From: Hyaloraphidium curvatum SAG 235-1
Taxonomy: Eukaryota; Fungi; Monoblepharomycota
Reading direction: 5' to 3'
NCBI GenBank assembly: GCA_025558095.1
Contig: JAIVFI010000005.1
Coordinates: forward strand, 744,001-808,000
DNA: 64,000 nt
The stretch's first letter is position 1. Each line of letters begins with the position of its first letter. A model generated the notes under the pieces. That model had not been told where the DNA came from. It saw only the letters and a list, made by a program, of their open reading frames with translations, and did no database searches. Shown piece by piece: positions 37,531-48,459 of the stretch. Made by a program: the position numbers and the translations under genes.

Positions 37531-38064
37531 CTACAGTGTCCACGAATCGTGGCAGATCCAATCGCCGTTGTCCATCTGCTCGTAGAGCCGCACCTCCCAC
37601 GCGACCTTGGAGCGCGGATCGACCATCAGACGCGCCAGCGCAGCGAGGCGCTGCCCCTGGTCCCTCCGGAACCCGTACGCCAGGCTGACGTGGAGGTTCC
37701 CCTTGAGCCGCAGTGCCTCCCTGCGCGTCGGCGAGCGTGCGCGACGGGCAAAGTCCGCGGTCACGGCTTCGAGCCACGGCGCGTCGACCAGCAAGCCGTG
37801 GAAGCGTTCGCCGAGCTCCATCCTCGCGATCGACAGCGGCGGGTCCGGGCGGGAGGGGCGTGCCGCGTCGAGCGCGTCCGTGAGCGCTTTGGTGTAGATC
37901 GGTACCGATTCGGGCGCGTCTTCGAAGAAGCCGGTCAGAGTGACGTGGGGCGGGTACGCGTGCGCCTCGTTGCGCCCGACGGAGGAGAGCGAGCACGCAA
38001 AGTACGCGTCCAGCTGGTCGGCCAGCGGGCCTGTGGGGCACGCGTAAACGATGTAGCGCGGCAT
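37531..38064 (-). CDS. 2H phosphoesterase superfamily protein (UBASH3-2H/cyanobacterial-like), intronless
   Basis: Two HxT/S motifs, AHAYPPHVTLTGFF and LHVSLAYGF; N-terminal YIVYACPTGPL. Confidence 0.85.
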   Translation of the reverse strand: MPRYIVYACPTGPLADQLDAYFACSLSSVGRNEAHAYPPHVTLTGFFEDAPESVPIYTKALTDALDAARPSRPDPPLSIARMELGERFHGLLVDAPWLEAVTADFARRARSPTRREALRLKGNLHVSLAYGFRRDQGQRLAALARLMVDPRSKVAWEVRLYEQMDNGDWICHDSWTL

Positions 38065-38161
38065 TCCCGCTGCGGCTCCGGTCGTCGTTGCGTTGGCGCG
38101 ACCAGTGATCGCGTGGAATCGCGCGATTGTCTCCCACGTCCGCAATTTCGATTGCCCGCCA

Positions 38162-39031
38162 ATGGCCGACCCGCTGAAACACATCGCGGGCGTCGATCAC
38201 GTCGTCGTCGCGGTCCGCGCGCTCGACGCCGCGGCGGCGGCCTGGCGCGCGCTGGGCTTCACGCTCTCTCCCCGCGGCGAGCACCCGCCGCAGCTCGGCA
38301 CCGCGAACCACACGCTGATGCTCTCCGACGGCGACTACATCGAGCTGCTCGCGCCCGTCATCGACACGGACTTCAACGCCGCGATGCGCGCGTTCCTCGC
38401 GCGGGGCGAGGGGATCGACCGCGTCGCGTTCAAGACCGACGACGCGGCGGCGGGCGTCGCGGAGCTCAAGGCTCGCGGGATCGACGCCGCCGGGCCGATC
38501 AACTTTGCCCGGCCGGTCGATCTCCCCGAGGCCGATGGCGGCGGGTCGGCCGAGGCCGCGTTCAATGTTCTTCTGTATCCGCCATCGGCGCGGCCCGCAG
38601 GCCTGGGCCTTTTCGCCTGCCAGCAGCTCACGCCCGACACGGTGTGGATCAAATCTCTGTGCCGCCACGCGAACGGGGCGCGCGGGCTCGTGCGGGTCGA
38701 GATCCTGGCCGGGGACCCGCGGGCGGCGGCCGCGGAGGCGTCGAGGCTGTTGGGTCGGCCCGTGAAGGAGGAGGCTGACGGGGCATTCGAGATTGCCACC
38801 GCACCGGGACTCGCATCGCTCGTCTTTCTCTCCCTTTCTGCGTTCAAGGCGCGTCACAAGGGGCTCGTCTCGGACGCGGATGCGGAGAAGCTGCCAAACG
38901 AGGGCGCGGCGGGCCTCGTGGTCCGTACCGAAGACCTCGGCGCAGCAAGGAAGTGCCTCGGAGTTAGCGACGGGGCAAATGAGGTCGGCAAGTGGGCTAC
39001 GGGGTTGCTAGTCGTGTTCGTCACGGCGTGA
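38162..39031 (+). CDS. VOC/Glyoxalase_3 family protein, intronless, bacterial-type
   Basis: GVDHVVVAVRALDAAAAAWRALGFTLSPRGEH..GTANHTLML...YIELL, FLARGEG and HANGARG motifs. Confidence 0.9.
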   Translation: MADPLKHIAGVDHVVVAVRALDAAAAAWRALGFTLSPRGEHPPQLGTANHTLMLSDGDYIELLAPVIDTDFNAAMRAFLARGEGIDRVAFKTDDAAAGVAELKARGIDAAGPINFARPVDLPEADGGGSAEAAFNVLLYPPSARPAGLGLFACQQLTPDTVWIKSLCRHANGARGLVRVEILAGDPRAAAAEASRLLGRPVKEEADGAFEIATAPGLASLVFLSLSAFKARHKGLVSDADAEKLPNEGAAGLVVRTEDLGAARKCLGVSDGANEVGKWATGLLVVFVTA

Positions 39032-39100
39032 TAGAGGGCGGTGGATGCTGCTACTTTTTTCTCAAACGATCACATTACAATTCCGTCCTTTGACGAGCGT

Positions 39101-40594
39101 TCACGACGGACACGCAATCTCGAGCGTGAGCACCACGCCCGATGATCTGAGGACCGACCACAGGCCCACTGCCACGGTGAACACGGCGATCAGGATCGCC
39201 CTCGCGGACCCCCAATCCGCCTCGATCCCCAGCACCTTTGCCCTGGCCTGATCCGCGGCGTACTTTTCCAAAAGCTCCGCATGCCACGCCAGGCTCTTCG
39301 CCGCCCGGGTGCCCGAGAGCCCGTCGGCGGTGGCGCGCGCGAGGAGCGCTGTGGCTTCGCGGGAGGCGCGGCGCAGGACAGTCGAGGTGCCCGAGACCTG
39401 GGCGTTGGCGGCGGCGACGGCGAGCAGTTCGCGGGCAAAGAAGTAGAGGAAGTAGAGGAGCGGGGTGAGCCAGCAGGCGGGGATGCAAGATCCGGCGACG
39501 ACGTTGGCGATGGCACCGGCAACGGGGAGCACGACGAAGCCGACAAAGAGCGCCCAGGAGACGCCGAGCACGGCGAATCGGTTGGTGCGGTAGGCGGCAA
39601 GGCGGTCGCAGAGGTCCTGGTAGGGCTCCGTGATCCGCAGTGCGGCTTCCGCGGCCTCGCGGTCGCGATCGGCGTCCCAGAGCGCTGCAAAGTGGCGCCT
39701 CAGCATGTCCGCCACTGCGTCCGAAACGGCCCTCACGTGGAGGCGCCGCGAGAGCTCCAGGGTGGGCAGCGAGGCAGAGACCAGAAGCAGGCTGGAAAAG
39801 ACCAGCATTATTGCGAACGAGACCGCGAGCAGGGACGCAAAAGTGGCGGGGACCGGCGTGGTCCAGGTGAAGGAGCGCAGGGTGATGAATTGGGTGTAGA
39901 TGCCGAAGAGAAGGTGCACGCCCATCAGCGCAAATCTGGCGAGGACGTCCAATAGACGGAGCAGGCCGGAGCGTCGAGGGAGGCCACCCGCGCAGGCTGG
40001 CTTGCCGCAGGGGCACGCCTCGTCACCGTCCACGTGACGGACCAACGGGTGCTCGGGCGCCTTCCCGGTCTCCACGTTCACAGCTTCCGCAGCAGCATTC
40101 TGATCTGGAGAGAAGTTCACGAGCCGCGCCCACCGCGCCAGCACGGCGTGCGGGTGGCCGCTGAAGTCATACTGCTTCGATCGAAAGTACCTGCCGCGGC
40201 CGGTGAGGCCCGAAACGGCACCCCACACATGCCAGGCGATGTAGATGGCCAGAAAAGCCACGGCAACGGCAAACTGCGTGGGCCCGAACAGTGGGATGCC
40301 GGAGCGGGGGATATATGCCGTGACGATGGCCCAGCTCGCGCCAAAGGTGACCATGCACGCCGCGAAGACGCCCCCGGTGTACAGCGGCGACAGCCTCAGT
40401 TGCAGACCGACGAGAACGCGCAATAGCGGCGACCCGAGGCCGCGGAGAAGCGCCGTCCTGTCCAGCCGAGGGGCCGCGTTGGCATCCTCGACTCGGCGCG
40501 CGCCCGCGTCCGGCAGCGTGAACAGGTGCGGTGGGACCGGCGGCGAGGCGGGAAACAGCGCGAGGCGCTCGTCGGCGTCGAAAATCGCGTCCAT
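39101..40594 (-). CDS. Multi-pass membrane protein, lineage-expanded 7TM family (copy 1)
   Basis: About 7 hydrophobic segments, loop motif HVDGDEACPCGKPACAG, C-terminal KVLGIEADWGSARAILIAVFTVAVGLWSVLRSSG...CP shared with the paralogs at 50012 and 60526. Confidence 0.85.
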   Translation of the reverse strand: MDAIFDADERLALFPASPPVPPHLFTLPDAGARRVEDANAAPRLDRTALLRGLGSPLLRVLVGLQLRLSPLYTGGVFAACMVTFGASWAIVTAYIPRSGIPLFGPTQFAVAVAFLAIYIAWHVWGAVSGLTGRGRYFRSKQYDFSGHPHAVLARWARLVNFSPDQNAAAEAVNVETGKAPEHPLVRHVDGDEACPCGKPACAGGLPRRSGLLRLLDVLARFALMGVHLLFGIYTQFITLRSFTWTTPVPATFASLLAVSFAIMLVFSSLLLVSASLPTLELSRRLHVRAVSDAVADMLRRHFAALWDADRDREAAEAALRITEPYQDLCDRLAAYRTNRFAVLGVSWALFVGFVVLPVAGAIANVVAGSCIPACWLTPLLYFLYFFARELLAVAAANAQVSGTSTVLRRASREATALLARATADGLSGTRAAKSLAWHAELLEKYAADQARAKVLGIEADWGSARAILIAVFTVAVGLWSVLRSSGVVLTLEIACPS

Positions 40595-40686: not shown

Positions 40687-42702
40687 TCACAGAGCTGTGG
40701 AGCGCGAATTTTTGAGCTTCTCGACCGAGCTGTAAACGACGGCAATGTCCTGTTTGCGGGGTATCAGCGGATGCACGTCGGCTTCACCCTGCGCCTGTAC
40801 CAACGTGGCTTCCCTGGCTGCCGGGCAGGAATCCGACGATCTCGTCCATGCTGGTGTCCACGATGATGGTGCCGCTCTCGTAGCGCTGGAAGCCGCCGAC
40901 GGCGATGAGGAGGTACCTCCCGTCGTCGGTCATGCCCATGCTCTGCGTGTCGTGCACCACATAGCGGATCTCCTTGACGATCCTGAGCCTGGTGAGGTCG
41001 ACCACGGCAATCGAGGAGCGGGATTCCTTGGTCGACGGGTCTGCGTCCCCGTGGATGGGGTTGAGCACGGCGATGTAGACCTTGTTGGGGTAGATGGGGT
41101 GGAACGTCATGTGGAAGGGCGACGGGTACATGCCCTTCCACAGCGGGTCGCGGATCACGCCCAGGCGCTTCCACTTCTTGGGGTCGGGGTCCGACGAGTC
41201 GTAGACCGAGATGCCGTTGAGCTTGACGTTGGCCATGTTGAGGAAGAAGTGGCCGTCGGGCGAGAAGCCGAGCTCGTGGCTGGGCGTATCGACGCGGTAC
41301 AGCTCGATCTCCCAAGTGTCGTCGCCGACCTTTTGCACGGGGCGGTGCTCGAGGGTGTCCTCGTTGAAGGAGATGTACAGGTAGGGCTCCGCCGCATCGC
41401 TGGTCATGTCGTGGACCACGGCACCGCCGAGCATGCGCAGGATCTCGGCGGCCCACTTGCCCGTCGGGTGCCAAACAAAGCCGTCCGCGGCCACGAGCGA
41501 CTCCTTCTGGGGTCCGGGGATCAGGCCCTGCTCGATCTGGCCCTCGGCCATGGGCACCAGTTCCACGGTGATCTTGTTGCCCTTGGTGCCGAGGAGGTCG
41601 TACTTGCCCGTCTTGGGGTCCGGCCTGAGCTTGGTGATGCGAACGTTGCCGCCCTTGGCCTGGATGAGGATTGCCATAATGTCAAATTGTGAAGTGCTTG
41701 GGACTCGCGACTAACGACCTACGCACCCAGCAGTTTTTGAGCGACTTGCAGTTGTTTCCGATCCAATCATAGCGGAAGGACGCCTTGACTGTGCCGCTGT
41801 CCTTGTCGATCCATGCATTGACGTCCTTCTGGCCGTCGGAAACCGTGAACGACTTAGCGTCGTCGGGTTTGACGCAGACGTGCACGCCGAGGCCGAGTCC
41901 CGAGATGTCGCTGTAGTTCTTTGCGATAGACAGGCTGTTGCCGTCGAAATGCAGCAGGTAGAAGTTTGTGGCCTGCGGGATCGTGTCGGCGGTCCACTTG
42001 GTCGGGATGTTGTAGAGCAGCGTGTTGGCGCCGCCCTGGCACGAGTTGATCACGTCGAAGCCCTTGCGCGGGTTGGCCGACGGGAACGCCTGGATGTGGT
42101 GGGCGATGCAGTTTTCGTCTCCCCTGTGTTGGGGGAGTGCGGAAGTTAGAGGCTGGCCTCCGGATCGGACGGCAGCTGACCGACCAGTTCGAGTACCACA
42201 GCGACGCGAGAGTGAGGCCGCGCTTGAGATCGAGAACGTTGACGCCGAGGCCGAGTTTCGTGGGATAGACGACGAGCTGGTCGCCGAGGTCGAACCCATT
42301 CAACTTCATGGTGTAGTTGTCCCAGTTCCAGTCGTATCGCGGGATGTCATCGCCGTACTGCACCTGCAACGTTGTGCAACGTGTTTCAGGACTAGTTTGG
42401 CGATAGGTCAGCGCATGCGCCGGCCTCACCTCGGAACGGAACGCGGTCACGTCAACCACGCCGTCCGCGGGGGAACGCGTCTGCGGCGCCGAGGGCGAGC
42501 CGCGGCCGACCAACAGCAGTGCGAGATTGACAAATCCGAGAGCGGTCGACACCACGAGCAGGCCGAGGAGCAGCGCAGAGCGGTCAATGCGGCGGTTCAG
42601 GACCAGGGATTCGCCGGCGAGAGTGCGGCCAGACGCGCCGGACTCGTCCGAAACGCGCGAGAGCGGGTCGTCCTTGCCGAAAAGCGGTACGAAGTCGGCC
42701 AT
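40687..42702 (-). CDS. tcdh: Thiocyanate dehydrogenase (TcDH)-like copper beta-propeller with an N-terminal TM anchor; introns 42364-42429, 42124-42184, 41660-41726 and 40750-40804
   Basis: The spliced protein contains PTKLG, NWGDENCIAHHIQAFPSANP, SCQGG, SGLGLGVHV, DGQKD, GTKGNKITVELVP, VAADG, SHELGFSPDG, YPSPFHM, GFQRYESG and GFLPGSQGSHDIAVV...SRST, collinear with my recollection of Thioalkalivibrio TcDH. Confidence 0.88.
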
Positions 42703-43126
42703 GGCGGCAGATCCGGACCTGAAAACGCGCCGAGGGCGGTCCCGGAGCTTGGGGTGCCAATACTCAGGGGCCCTGTGTCCCTGCGTCCGGAGCGTCCGAA
42801 GCTCCGGATACGGGCGGCCCAGCCGCCAAGCACCGGACGTCATTGGATTCGAAACGCACACAGTGGTGCTTTCGGCAGCCACATGCGAACATACATGAAT
42901 CTCCGTCTTTGAGGCATTTGGGATCGAAACCCTGTTGTTCTGATCTTCCGCAAGACGGCCTGCACAGGCCCGCCCTACAGAGCTAGAAGACGGGCAAAGG
43001 CCTGGAAGCTCCGCCGACAACAGTTCAACAGTGCTGCTGCTCAAACGTCTTTCCAATGTCACAGTATCATTGACAACCCTGCCCTTGACTGCGCGAGCTC
43101 CAGCTGCTGCTCAACCTCCAAGTCGC

Positions 43127-44170
43127 TCATGACGGACACGCAATCTCGAGCGTCAGCACCACGCCCGACGATCTGAGGACCGACCACAGGCCCACGGCGA
43201 TGGTGAACACGGCGATCAGGATCGCCCTGGCGGACCCCCAATTCGCCTCGATCCCCAGCACCTTTGCCCTGGCCTGATCCGCGGCGTACTTTTCCAAAAG
43301 CTCCGCATGCCACGCCAGGCTCTTTGCCGCGCGGGTGCCGGAGAGTCCGTCGGCGGCAGCGCGGGCGAGGAGCGCGGTGGCTTCGCGGGAGGCGCGGCGA
43401 AGGACGGCCGAGGTGCCCGAGACCTGGGCGTTGGCTGCAGCGACGGCGAGCAGTTCGCGGGCAAAGAAGTAGAGGAAGTAGAGGAGCGGGGTGAGCCAGC
43501 AGGCGGGGATGCAAGATCCGGCGACGACGTTGGCGATGGCACCGGCAACGGGGAGCACGACGAACAAAGAGCGCCCAGGAGACGCCGAGAACCGCGAATC
43601 GCTTCGTGCGATAGGCCGCGAGACGGTCGCAGAGGTCCTGATAGGGCTCCGTGATCCGCAGTGCGGCTTCCGCGGTCTCGCGGTCGCGATCGGCATCCCA
43701 GAGCGCGGCAAAGTGGCGCCGGAGCATGTCGGCTGCAGTATCCGAAACCGCCCGCACGTGAAGGCGCGCCGCGAAAGTTCCAGGGTAGGCAGCGAGGCAG
43801 AGACCAGCGACAGGCTGGAAAAGACCAGCATGGTTGCGTACGAGACCGCGACCAAGGACGCAAACGTGGCGGGGACCGGCGTCGTCCAGGTGAGGAGCGC
43901 AGGGTGATGAACTGCGTGTAGATGCCAAGAAATTGAAGCAAACACATCAAGGCAAACCGAGAACATACGTCCAGCAGGCGCAGTTGCCCCGAGCGTCTAG
44001 GGAGCCTGCCTGCACAGGTCTCACTGCCGCAGGGGCACGTATCGTCATTGTTCACGTGCCGGATCAGCGGGTGCTTAGACACCTTCCCGGCTTCCACATC
44101 AGGAGCCAGAGCGTCCACGAGCTGGGCCCAACGTGCCATAACCGCGTGAGGGTGACCGCTGAAGTCCTGC
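43127..44170 (-). pseudogene. 5'-truncated, frameshifted duplicate of the 7TM gene at 39101-40594
   Basis: Very high nucleotide similarity to 39101-40170, but the homologous peptide is split over three ORF-track frames. Confidence 0.9.
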
Positions 44171-47568: not shown

Positions 47569-48459
47569 ATGGAGCCCGCGGGGGCCCCGGCCCTGCCCGA
47601 TGCGCCGTGCTACCTCAACGGAGAATATCTCCCCGTCAACAAGGCCCAGATCTCCGTGCTGGACAGGGGCTTCATATTCGGCGACGGGATATACGACGTG
47701 GTCCCCGTCTATGCCTGCAAGCTCTTCAGGTTCGACGAGCACATCGCGCGGCTGGAGCGCGGGCTGCGAGAGATACGCATCCCGAACCCGCACACCCGCG
47801 AGGAGTGGCTGGAGCGGTGCCGGAAACTCGTGGCCATGCTGATGGAGCAGAAGGGCGCCGCGGACCAGGTGGTGTACATCCAGGTCACCCGCGGCCCCGC
47901 CCCGCGGGACCACGTGATGCCGGCCCACCCGTCGCCAACCGTCTTCATGATGGCCAACCCAATGCGGCCGCCTTCAGCAGAGATGCGCCAACGGGGCGTC
48001 AGCTGCGTGACGGTGCGCGACTTCCGCTGGGAACGCGGGGACATCAAGAGCGTCAGCCTCCTGGGAAACGTGCTCGCGCGGCAGGTATCGGCCGACGCGG
48101 GCGCCCTCGAGACCATCATGTTCCGTGACGGCTTCCTGACCGAGGCGTCGGGGAGCAACGTGTGGGTCGTTCGCGGCGGAGCGCTCCTCGGCCCGCCAAA
48201 GAGCGCGCACCTGCTCGAGGGCATCCGCGTGGACCTGCTGAGGGAGCTCTGCGGCAGCTGCGGGATCGAGTACCGGCTGCAGCCGGTTTCGGAGGCCGAG
48301 GTGCGCGGCGCGGACGAGGTGCTGGTCAGCTCGGCGACCAAGGAGATCCTGCCCGTCACGACGATAGACGGCGAGCCCGTGGCGGACGGCAAGCCGGGCC
48401 CGGTCTGCGGGAGGCTGTACGAGGCGTACCAGCAGGCCAAGAGATCCATGTCGATCTGA
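47569..48459 (+). CDS. dat: D-amino acid aminotransferase (PLP fold IV), intronless, betaproteobacterial-like
   Basis: ISVLDRGFIFGDGIYDVVPVY, YIQVTRG.APRDH, RWERGDIKSVSLLGNVLARQ (PLP Lys), TEASGSN, LEGIR, SSATKE. Confidence 0.92.
   Translation: MEPAGAPALPDAPCYLNGEYLPVNKAQISVLDRGFIFGDGIYDVVPVYACKLFRFDEHIARLERGLREIRIPNPHTREEWLERCRKLVAMLMEQKGAADQVVYIQVTRGPAPRDHVMPAHPSPTVFMMANPMRPPSAEMRQRGVSCVTVRDFRWERGDIKSVSLLGNVLARQVSADAGALETIMFRDGFLTEASGSNVWVVRGGALLGPPKSAHLLEGIRVDLLRELCGSCGIEYRLQPVSEAEVRGADEVLVSSATKEILPVTTIDGEPVADGKPGPVCGRLYEAYQQAKRSMSI

Follow-up and report, generated by a model that had tools for sequence, protein, structure and literature searches.

A spliced, transcribed gene on the minus strand

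The window analysed here is the whole stretch of 64,000 nucleotides (nt) taken from contig JAIVFI010000005.1 of the fungus Hyaloraphidium curvatum SAG 235-1. On its minus strand, between positions 40687 and 42702, lies a gene whose product resembles bacterial thiocyanate dehydrogenase (TcDH). Three long open frames in different phases jointly carry the TcDH-like sequence in the minus-strand listing of open reading frames (ORFs), and the gene is modelled as follows (amino acids, aa; residues after an equals sign are those of TcDH from Thioalkalivibrio paradoxus, tpTcDH):

40687..42702, minus strand: TcDH-like coding region, 5 exons and 4 introns, 588 codons plus TGA (40689-40687), from reading of the sequence
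42430..42702, minus strand: exon 1, aa 1-91; acidic N-terminal tail, presumed twin-arginine relic, predicted membrane anchor, start of the stalk
42364..42429, minus strand: intron 1, 66 nt, phase 0, GTGAGG..CAG, skipped in the transcript contig
42185..42363, minus strand: exon 2, aa 92-151 (last codon split); stalk and first blade, K127 (=K103)
42124..42184, minus strand: intron 2, 61 nt, phase 2 within the W151 codon, GTCGGT..CAG, skipped in the transcript contig
41727..42123, minus strand: exon 3, aa 151-283; H159/H160 (=H135/H136), Q180 (=Q156), H232 (=H206)
41660..41726, minus strand: intron 3, 67 nt, phase 0, GTGCGT..CAG, skipped in the transcript contig
40805..41659, minus strand: exon 4, aa 284-568; E316 (=E288), D342 (=D314), H411 (=H381), H466 (=H437), Q522 (at H482), H568 (=H528)
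40750..40804, minus strand: intron 4, 55 nt, phase 0, between H568 and D569, GTTGGT..CAG, skipped in the transcript contig
40687..40749, minus strand: exon 5, aa 569-588 and stop; D569 (=D529), R584 (=R544)

Branch-point-like motifs (CTGAC, CTAAC, TTGAC and CTGAT) are present in all four introns. The only public run containing the stretch, X1, is stored as contigs, probably of RNA, whose depth is not to be read as an expression level. One of them, of 3400 nt, matches the stretch with 0 mismatches and leaves gaps of exactly 55, 67, 61 and 66 nt at the modelled introns, bordered by CT..AC on the plus strand. Since this mismatch-free contig skips exactly the four introns, the gene is transcribed and spliced as modelled, and an earlier reading of the same DNA, made from the sequence only, was right to call it an intron-containing eukaryotic gene: it has five exons and four GT-AG introns, the removal of which is confirmed by the contig.

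A profile search also retrieved the protein itself from GenBank, where it had figured only as "hypothetical protein DFJ74DRAFT_702858" of Hyaloraphidium curvatum (P0151). With 588 aa this entry has the length of our model; it matches exon 4 at 100% identity over 285 aa and crosses each of the four splice junctions as modelled. Our exons were searched singly, not joined, and every full-length analysis described below used P0151. The gene has a GC content of about 0.63, the same as its surroundings, and lies within a 937-kb contig of an assembly of 31.9 Mb in 55 contigs. The locus is a functional-looking, transcribed and spliced nuclear gene of Hyaloraphidium curvatum (Monoblepharomycota).

Homology with thiocyanate dehydrogenase and the residue at position 482

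When the full protein was compared with the sequences of the PDB (phmmer), the matches were TcDH entries only. The enzyme of Pelomicrobium methylotrophicum (pmTcDH, 8q9x) aligned at E 4e-103, residues 117-586 against 34-487, and tpTcDH (5f75) at E 9e-94, residues 116-587 against 92-547. Exon 4 alone found the solved TcDH chains at E 4.9e-59 and exon 3 alone found pmTcDH at E 1.6e-27; exons 1 and 2, each alone, gave no match in the PDB, and this region aligns only in the full-length context. A Pfam scan of the exons recognised no family, a null result that is uninformative because Pfam has no TcDH model.

An AlphaFold2 model of the protein, built from 60 homologues, reached a pLDDT of 84 (above 90 over most of residues 120-580) and a pTM of 0.82. 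In a Foldseek search with this model the first 20 ranks were all TcDH, with target-normalised TM scores of 0.94-0.96, root-mean-square deviations of 1.4-2.3 Å over 470-488 columns and 36-41% identity, and the next fold was a YVTN propeller at E 1e-12. The protein begins with a short acidic tail, which is followed by a single predicted transmembrane helix and a stalk of some 50 residues; the remainder is a seven-bladed beta-propeller, homologous over its full length to bacterial TcDH, also named thiocyanate desulfurase (EC 1.8.2.7).

The published active site of TcDH comprises K103, H135, H136, Q156, H206, E288, D314, H381, H437, H482, H528, D529 and R544 (PMC6504805, Fig. 4). We counted equivalences on the full-length PDB alignment, where pm chain numbering plus 59 gives tp numbering, consistently across the exon 3, exon 4 and full-protein alignments. 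Twelve of these 13 residues are kept in the fungal protein, as K127, H159, H160, Q180, H232, E316, D342, H411, H466, H568, D569 and R584. They include the equivalents of H135, H136, H206, D314, H381, H437 and H528, all present, which is not to imply a copper assignment for each, and all of the non-ligand residues K103, Q156, E288, D529 and R544 (K127, Q180, E316, D569 and R584). F436 and K281 are kept as well (F465 and K309), and so is Tyr164 (Y188), the proposed electron-transfer Tyr of TcDH; K103 and H528 are likewise proposed electron-transfer residues. Apart from 482, the active-site columns are invariant or nearly so in alignments of 60 and of 257 sequences.

These results agree with the sequence-only reading, which had taken the spliced protein to be collinear with TcDH and had named K103, H135/H136, H206, E288, D314, H381, H437 and H528 as conserved. 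The collinearity holds in the phmmer alignment over residues 117-586, each of the named residues sits at its equivalent position, and the best matches in alignment and superposition (TM about 0.95) are TcDH structures and not unrelated propellers. A Gln in place of H482, within a DTQ motif, had also been noticed, and the alignment places it at Q522:

40943..40945, minus strand: CAG codon of Q522, at the copper ligand His482 of tpTcDH (His447 of pmTcDH), by alignment

Canonical EC 1.8.2.7 enzymes have His at this position. Because His482 is replaced by Gln522, we file the protein as TcDH-like and not as a canonical enzyme. Among 257 near-full-length family members, a biased sample, column 482 holds Gln in 204, His in 31 and Glu in 11. 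His is found in the clade of characterised enzymes and in a handful of sequences that diverge strongly. The position has a third natural state, Glu, which occurs together with Ser at 320 in a cyanobacterial subclade from Synechocystis, Synechococcus PCC 6312, Neosynechococcus and Thermosynechococcaceae (P0260, P0262, P0288 and P0289). Gln-482 is the majority state in this sample and not a fungal peculiarity. An apparent His at 482 in the algal-type protein P0297, which might have been a natural His/Gln flip, was rejected as the product of a frameshifted translation. The co-variation of positions 320 and 482 (Met with Gln, Gly with His, Ser with Glu) was also set aside as evidence, for it amounts to only 1-2 independent contrasts and Gln/Gly combinations exist.

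Relatives, phylogeny and genomic surroundings

The family is rare: 112 clusters at 50% identity were found among 1.84 billion representatives (E <= 0.001), many of them fragments. The sequence-only reading had described TcDH as known from sulfur-oxidising bacteria, which stands as far as it goes, but the family is wider. A search with an 8-sequence alignment found a relative encoded in at least 272 bacterial species genomes, many of them of cyanobacteria and Reyranella-type Alphaproteobacteria; among the best 80 of these, the nearest to the fungal protein are from picocyanobacteria and most of the others from Reyranella-type Alphaproteobacteria.

Other eukaryotic copies, for which that reading had proposed to look, were found in a second fungus, in a metagenomic eukaryote contig and in green algae, so the TcDH-like gene is not unique to Hyaloraphidium. 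The copy of Borealophlyctis nickersoniae (Chytridiomycota; JADGKA010000171.1, L004 3567-5611) encodes a protein with 67% identity to that of Hyaloraphidium, across two fungal phyla. GenBank annotates this gene as two separate hypothetical proteins, KAJ3295276.1 and KAJ3295275.1. Where W352 would stand, an in-frame TGA terminates the first of them, and the sequence beyond it is still well conserved; the TGA could reflect a sequencing error, a gene inactivated recently or just one of the alleles of a diploid. The eukaryotic metagenomic contig (L005/L006) carries another copy. In Scenedesmus sp. PABB004 the homologue (HT031_000869, P0259) is an intron-rich gene of 3.9 kb with a 567-aa product, which adjoins a RIO2 kinase on a 4.85-Mb chromosome, and the algal-type relatives P0258, P0261 and P0276 share the same anchored architecture. 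Our search of the literature found no paper on eukaryotic TcDH homologues.

Hyaloraphidium also has a decayed second copy of the gene, on contig 28 at 509075-509417 (L002 1495-1903, and about 1400-1440). Only residues ~140-151 and 451-588 are left of it, at 55-80% identity and with a frameshift near residue 521, and its C-terminal end is closer to Borealophlyctis than to the intact copy.

A careful maximum-likelihood tree of 42 rows (LG+C20+F+G4), which was preceded by two quicker versions, was built from a set cleared of near-duplicates, of incomplete or frameshifted proteins and of four very long branches. Borealophlyctis and the metagenomic contig are represented in it by single exons or single high-scoring segment pairs only, and just one algal row bears a species name. 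The fungi (100/99), the algal-type group (100/99) and the two together (100/99) are each supported as clades, and so is the grouping of this eukaryote clade with picocyanobacteria (100/99) and of both with the Glu-type (E-482) cyanobacteria (100/99). The characterised enzymes form a separate clade (100/100), and the fungal gene lies outside it, with algae and cyanobacteria. The position of the characterised clade was anchored indirectly, by comparing P0338 and P0326 with the PDB (P0338 scores 880 bits to 8q9x and 803 bits to 5f75). Monophyly of the cyanobacterial sequences without the eukaryotes was rejected at a cost of 22 log-likelihood units (approximately unbiased test, p 0.023), a p value that is generous because the group was named after the tree had been seen. 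As placed by this tree, then, a eukaryote-only clade of chytrid-type fungi and green algae is nested among cyanobacterial homologues as sister to picocyanobacteria, which answers the earlier call for a phylogeny to find the donor with the cyanobacterial branch. In the few sequences sampled, the fungal and the algal genes each form a group that excludes the other, which is compatible with a transfer in either direction.

No intron position is common to Hyaloraphidium, Borealophlyctis and Scenedesmus. Borealophlyctis has at least six introns of its own, with a micro-exon around Y148-N156, and no counterpart of the four Hyaloraphidium introns; intron 4 is absent both from its gene and from the decayed Hyaloraphidium copy. 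The Scenedesmus gene is divided into many small exons, and the intron that comes nearest to a Hyaloraphidium one (GC-AG, L089 4727-4830) is offset from intron 3 by one codon in the downstream direction. This lack of shared introns is as expected for the import of an intronless bacterial gene followed by independent intron gain. We propose that an intronless, Tat-exported (twin-arginine translocation) cyanobacterial gene entered a eukaryote once and was then passed between algae and chytrids, and that introns would have been gained independently in each lineage.

A repeat search showed that the gene lies between two direct repeats about 1 kb long, with 72-93% identity and spaced ~4022-4026 nt apart (families D1-D4):

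39098..40075, no strand assigned: direct repeat copy A, the 3' two thirds of the intact gene of a 497-aa multi-pass membrane protein (39101-40594)
43124..44097, no strand assigned: direct repeat copy B, a degenerate, frame-broken copy of the same membrane protein gene

The 497-aa protein has about six hydrophobic segments and no Pfam match, and in a synteny check its gene did not adjoin the homologous genes of Borealophlyctis, the metagenomic contig or Scenedesmus. The genes next to the TcDH-like gene are unrelated to the genomic partners of bacterial TcDH, which are cytochrome c552, CopC/D or Cus and sometimes cyanase. The X1 contig (window 39625-43273) covers the TcDH-like gene and extends on the same strand into both flanking repeat-bearing genes. 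This suggests that overlapping or read-through transcripts of a compact region were merged during assembly, and it carries no information on operons. Two further stretches of the window, 37531-39031 (2H phosphoesterase and Glyoxalase_3) and 47569-48459 (D-amino-acid aminotransferase), were flagged as intronless and bacterial-looking; if this is right, the region may be enriched in transferred genes.

Predicted membrane anchor, possible function and known systems

Two features of exon 1 bear on where the protein goes:

42589..42594, minus strand: codons of R37-R38 (LNRR), presumed relic of a Tat motif, from comparison with bacterial homologues
42514..42582, minus strand: codons 41-63, predicted transmembrane helix (signal anchor), from hydropathy and AlphaFold2

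In bacterial homologues the signal opens with S/T/N-R-R, a short hydrophobic stretch comes next and Ala-rich sites for cleavage follow. The fungal protein starts with an acidic tail of 36 residues (about six acidic and three basic) and then L-N-R-R, the identical four residues found in cyanobacterial P0262; RR also stands ahead of the anchor in Borealophlyctis and Scenedesmus. The Kyte-Doolittle profile reaches its maximum of 2.3 for 19-residue windows starting at residues 44-48, with a peak spanning 44-66, and AlphaFold2 places helices at 41-56 and 58-63, both in line with the transmembrane anchor that had been read from the DNA as the replacement of a Tat signal. Inspection of the sequence found no Ala-x-Ala cleavage site after the 23-residue hydrophobic helix, and what stands here is not a cleavable Tat signal but a predicted helix of uncleaved type with RR. 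Eukaryotic hosts have no Tat export at the cell envelope. The simplest reading of the N-terminus is a Tat signal that grew longer and came to serve as an uncleaved signal anchor, and the predicted topology is type II, in which the N-terminus would be cytosolic and the propeller would face the secretory lumen or the cell surface. N-x-S/T sequons are present at N107 and N220, and C156, C234, C276 and C282 occur in the fungal sequences seen and not in the bacterial ones viewed, two of them (C156 and C234) lying two residues from the ligands H159/H160 and H232. The sequons and the fungal cysteines would fit an oxidising, secretory compartment.

That the locus holds a genuine, transferred and expressed gene of the TcDH family is almost certain. 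Beyond this, the explanation we favour, and hold to be fairly probable, is that its product is an anchored lumenal or surface copper enzyme with TcDH-type chemistry. The propeller would be loaded with copper in the secretory lumen or at the cell surface and would carry out two-electron chemistry of the TcDH type at a His/Gln-ligated copper cluster, with Glu316 and Lys127 in the roles proposed for the active-site residues Glu288 and Lys103. The catalytic apparatus is conserved near-completely and the only members assayed oxidise thiocyanate, which supports TcDH-type chemistry. The leading guess for the reaction would be thiocyanate to cyanate and sulfur, and thiocyanate as the physiological substrate is a plausible proposal to which we give somewhat less than an even chance.

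A number of observations weigh against this interpretation. To our knowledge, no enzyme of the Gln-482, cyanobacterial and eukaryotic clade has been assayed, the characterised enzymes belonging to a separate His-482 clade. One copper ligand differs (Gln for His482); variants engineered to carry this His-to-Gln change have been deposited in the PDB for both characterised enzymes (6sji, 8yu5 and 8yu6), and these would argue against thiocyanate if they are inactive. Topology and compartment are predictions. Bacterial TcDH donates electrons to a periplasmic cytochrome c, a partner that one would not look for on the lumenal side of a fungal membrane or at its outer face. The bacterial holders of the clade are phototrophs or heterotrophs, and the neighbourhoods of the nearest bacterial homologues showed no link to thiocyanate, cyanate or sulfur oxidation. 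In two picocyanobacterial loci (L008 5413-7996 and L009 5413-7948) the genes of a MacB/FtsX-type permease and an ABC ATPase come after the homologue, stop codons overlapping with the starts that follow, and the pair may be a maturation or export module; upstream of the homologue in L008 lie a class-V aminotransferase (cysteine-desulfurase-like) and a DUF456 protein. The Reyranella neighbourhoods were dropped, as their high-GC loci gave spurious antisense ORFs. Cyanase, which the sequence-only reading had proposed to look for, did not turn up: its domain PF02560 was not found in a six-frame search of the genome, a weak test, and this argues, weakly, against a nitrogen-scavenging pathway.

Several of these observations would also fit a protein with the same fold and copper site and a different job, in which the Gln-482 clade, made up of cyanobacteria, Reyranella-type Alphaproteobacteria, algae and chytrids, acts on another small sulfur or pseudohalide substrate, or with an acceptor such as O2, and thiocyanate is a speciality of the His-482 enzymes. 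The differing ligand, the characterised enzymes in their own 100/100 clade apart from the fungal gene, nearest homologues held by phototrophs and heterotrophs and not by thiocyanate-oxidising lithotrophs, neighbourhoods without cyanase, cytochrome c or Cop/Cus genes and the weak cyanase negative in the fungus all point this way, and pmTcDH has been crystallised with molecular oxygen bound (title of 8q9x). On the other side, the 12 published active-site residues together with F436, K281, Y164 and probably T169 are kept family-wide, which argues for conserved chemistry, and Gln-482 proteins of 487-489 aa in our set adjoin the His-482 clade in the tree. An alphaproteobacterial homologue of 489 aa, whatever its residue at 482, is linked to thiocyanate degradation (PMC8061750), reportedly also by Hussain et al. 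in 2013. The Gln-type proteins of 487-489 aa might be the same as the thiocyanate-degrading enzyme of Afipia/THI201. We give a different job a substantial chance, if a minority one. A broader proposal, in which a cell-surface or lumenal copper enzyme of chytrids and algae, derived from cyanobacteria and passed between eukaryotes, oxidises thiocyanate, or a sulfur or pseudohalide anion akin to it, and does so without a periplasmic cytochrome, using for example O2 or a membrane acceptor, is speculative and taken whole rather unlikely.

The anchor could instead direct the protein to the inner membrane of mitochondria and place the propeller in the intermembrane space, cytochrome c accepting the electrons and thiocyanate oxidation feeding respiration. 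Horse-heart cytochrome c does work as an acceptor of TcDH in vitro, the electron-transfer residues K103, H528 and Y164 are kept, and a charged tail with a single N-terminal hydrophobic segment is, as general knowledge has it, the layout of stop-transfer proteins of the intermembrane space; but with about six acidic and three basic residues the first 36 positions are unlike a matrix-targeting presequence, and this acidic N-terminus makes a mitochondrial location less likely, indeed improbable in our estimation. The gene could also be a relic left by an old transfer, neutral or in decay and transcribed without further use, a view that would explain the broken second copy in the genome, the in-frame TGA of Borealophlyctis and the patchy distribution among fungi. 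That view is hard to reconcile with an intact frame of 588 codons, four correctly spliced introns, the conserved catalytic residues and 67% identity to Borealophlyctis across two phyla, and we deem it highly improbable. Bacterial or algal contamination, or an assembly artefact, comes to mind given that Hyaloraphidium was historically kept in an algal culture collection and that the nearest relatives are algal and cyanobacterial. Its chance is practically negligible, as the spliceosomal introns are confirmed by a transcript, the gene sits inside a 937-kb contig of the fungal assembly, identity to any alga or bacterium is only about 50% and the same genome carries a decayed paralogue elsewhere, on a different contig.

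TcDH belongs to a very small number of enzymes with a three-copper, sulfur-acting cluster, and the literature that we searched treats it only in bacteria, mainly sulfur oxidisers. Intact, expressed TcDH-like copies are now placed in two eukaryotic kingdoms, and in our biased sample most of the family has Gln at one ligand position and occurs in non-lithotrophs. The gene offers a tractable case of transfer from a cyanobacterium to a eukaryote, and then between eukaryotes, in which protein targeting would have been rewired and introns gained lineage by lineage. Should the broader proposal of a surface or lumenal copper enzyme of chytrids and algae that works without a periplasmic cytochrome be true, the enzyme would be the first eukaryotic member of this copper-cluster class, with a natural Gln-ligated cluster and a Tat signal turned into a signal anchor. 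If it is active on thiocyanate, algae and chytrids would join the removers of this pollutant and plant- or cyanide-derived metabolite, and the protein would provide a eukaryote-expressible scaffold for that chemistry; if it is not, the substrate of the family's dominant branch becomes a question that this gene makes testable.

Compared with the TcDHs of Thioalkalivibrio paradoxus (5F75, 6I3Q and 6UWE) and Pelomicrobium methylotrophicum (8Q9X), the fungal protein has the same seven-bladed propeller (TM 0.95), collinear and 36-41% identical. It differs from them in having Gln for His482, a predicted anchor of uncleaved type, the stalk of about 50 residues and extra cysteines, and its gene differs in its eukaryotic host, its introns and its place in a different clade of the family tree. 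The engineered His482Gln and His447Gln TcDHs (6SJI, 8YU5 and 8YU6) carry the same substitution as the natural fungal Gln, which is why 8YU5 is the top sequence match, but they are laboratory point mutants in a His-type background. The closest bacterial relatives are the picocyanobacterial homologues of Cyanobium, Vulcanococcus and freshwater Synechococcus (P0001, P0114, P0150; L007-L012), with 48-50% identity. They are the sister group in the tree and share Gln-482 and Met-320 with the fungal protein, but have a true Tat signal, lack introns and are followed by the MacB/FtsX-type permease and ABC ATPase. Green-algal homologues (P0259, P0258, P0261 and P0276) form the sister clade of the fungal ones and are likewise anchored by an N-terminal hydrophobic segment and of the Gln-482 type, with RR kept in P0259; algal and fungal proteins share derived motifs, among them IPRY, which precedes the propeller, and V-E-L-x-P-M-A-E-G, which surrounds the catalytic Glu. 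They differ in an identity of only about 50%, in the positions of their introns, in His-His where the fungal protein has Ser-His before D529 and in their cysteine pattern, which includes a Cys pair in the stalk. Finally, the CuZ domain of nitrous oxide reductase (7APY) is also a seven-bladed propeller with a His-ligated multicopper cluster in its central channel, but it is a weak structural match (E 1e-9, TM 0.37) with no detectable sequence homology and with another cluster and chemistry, so that the likeness is one of analogy only.

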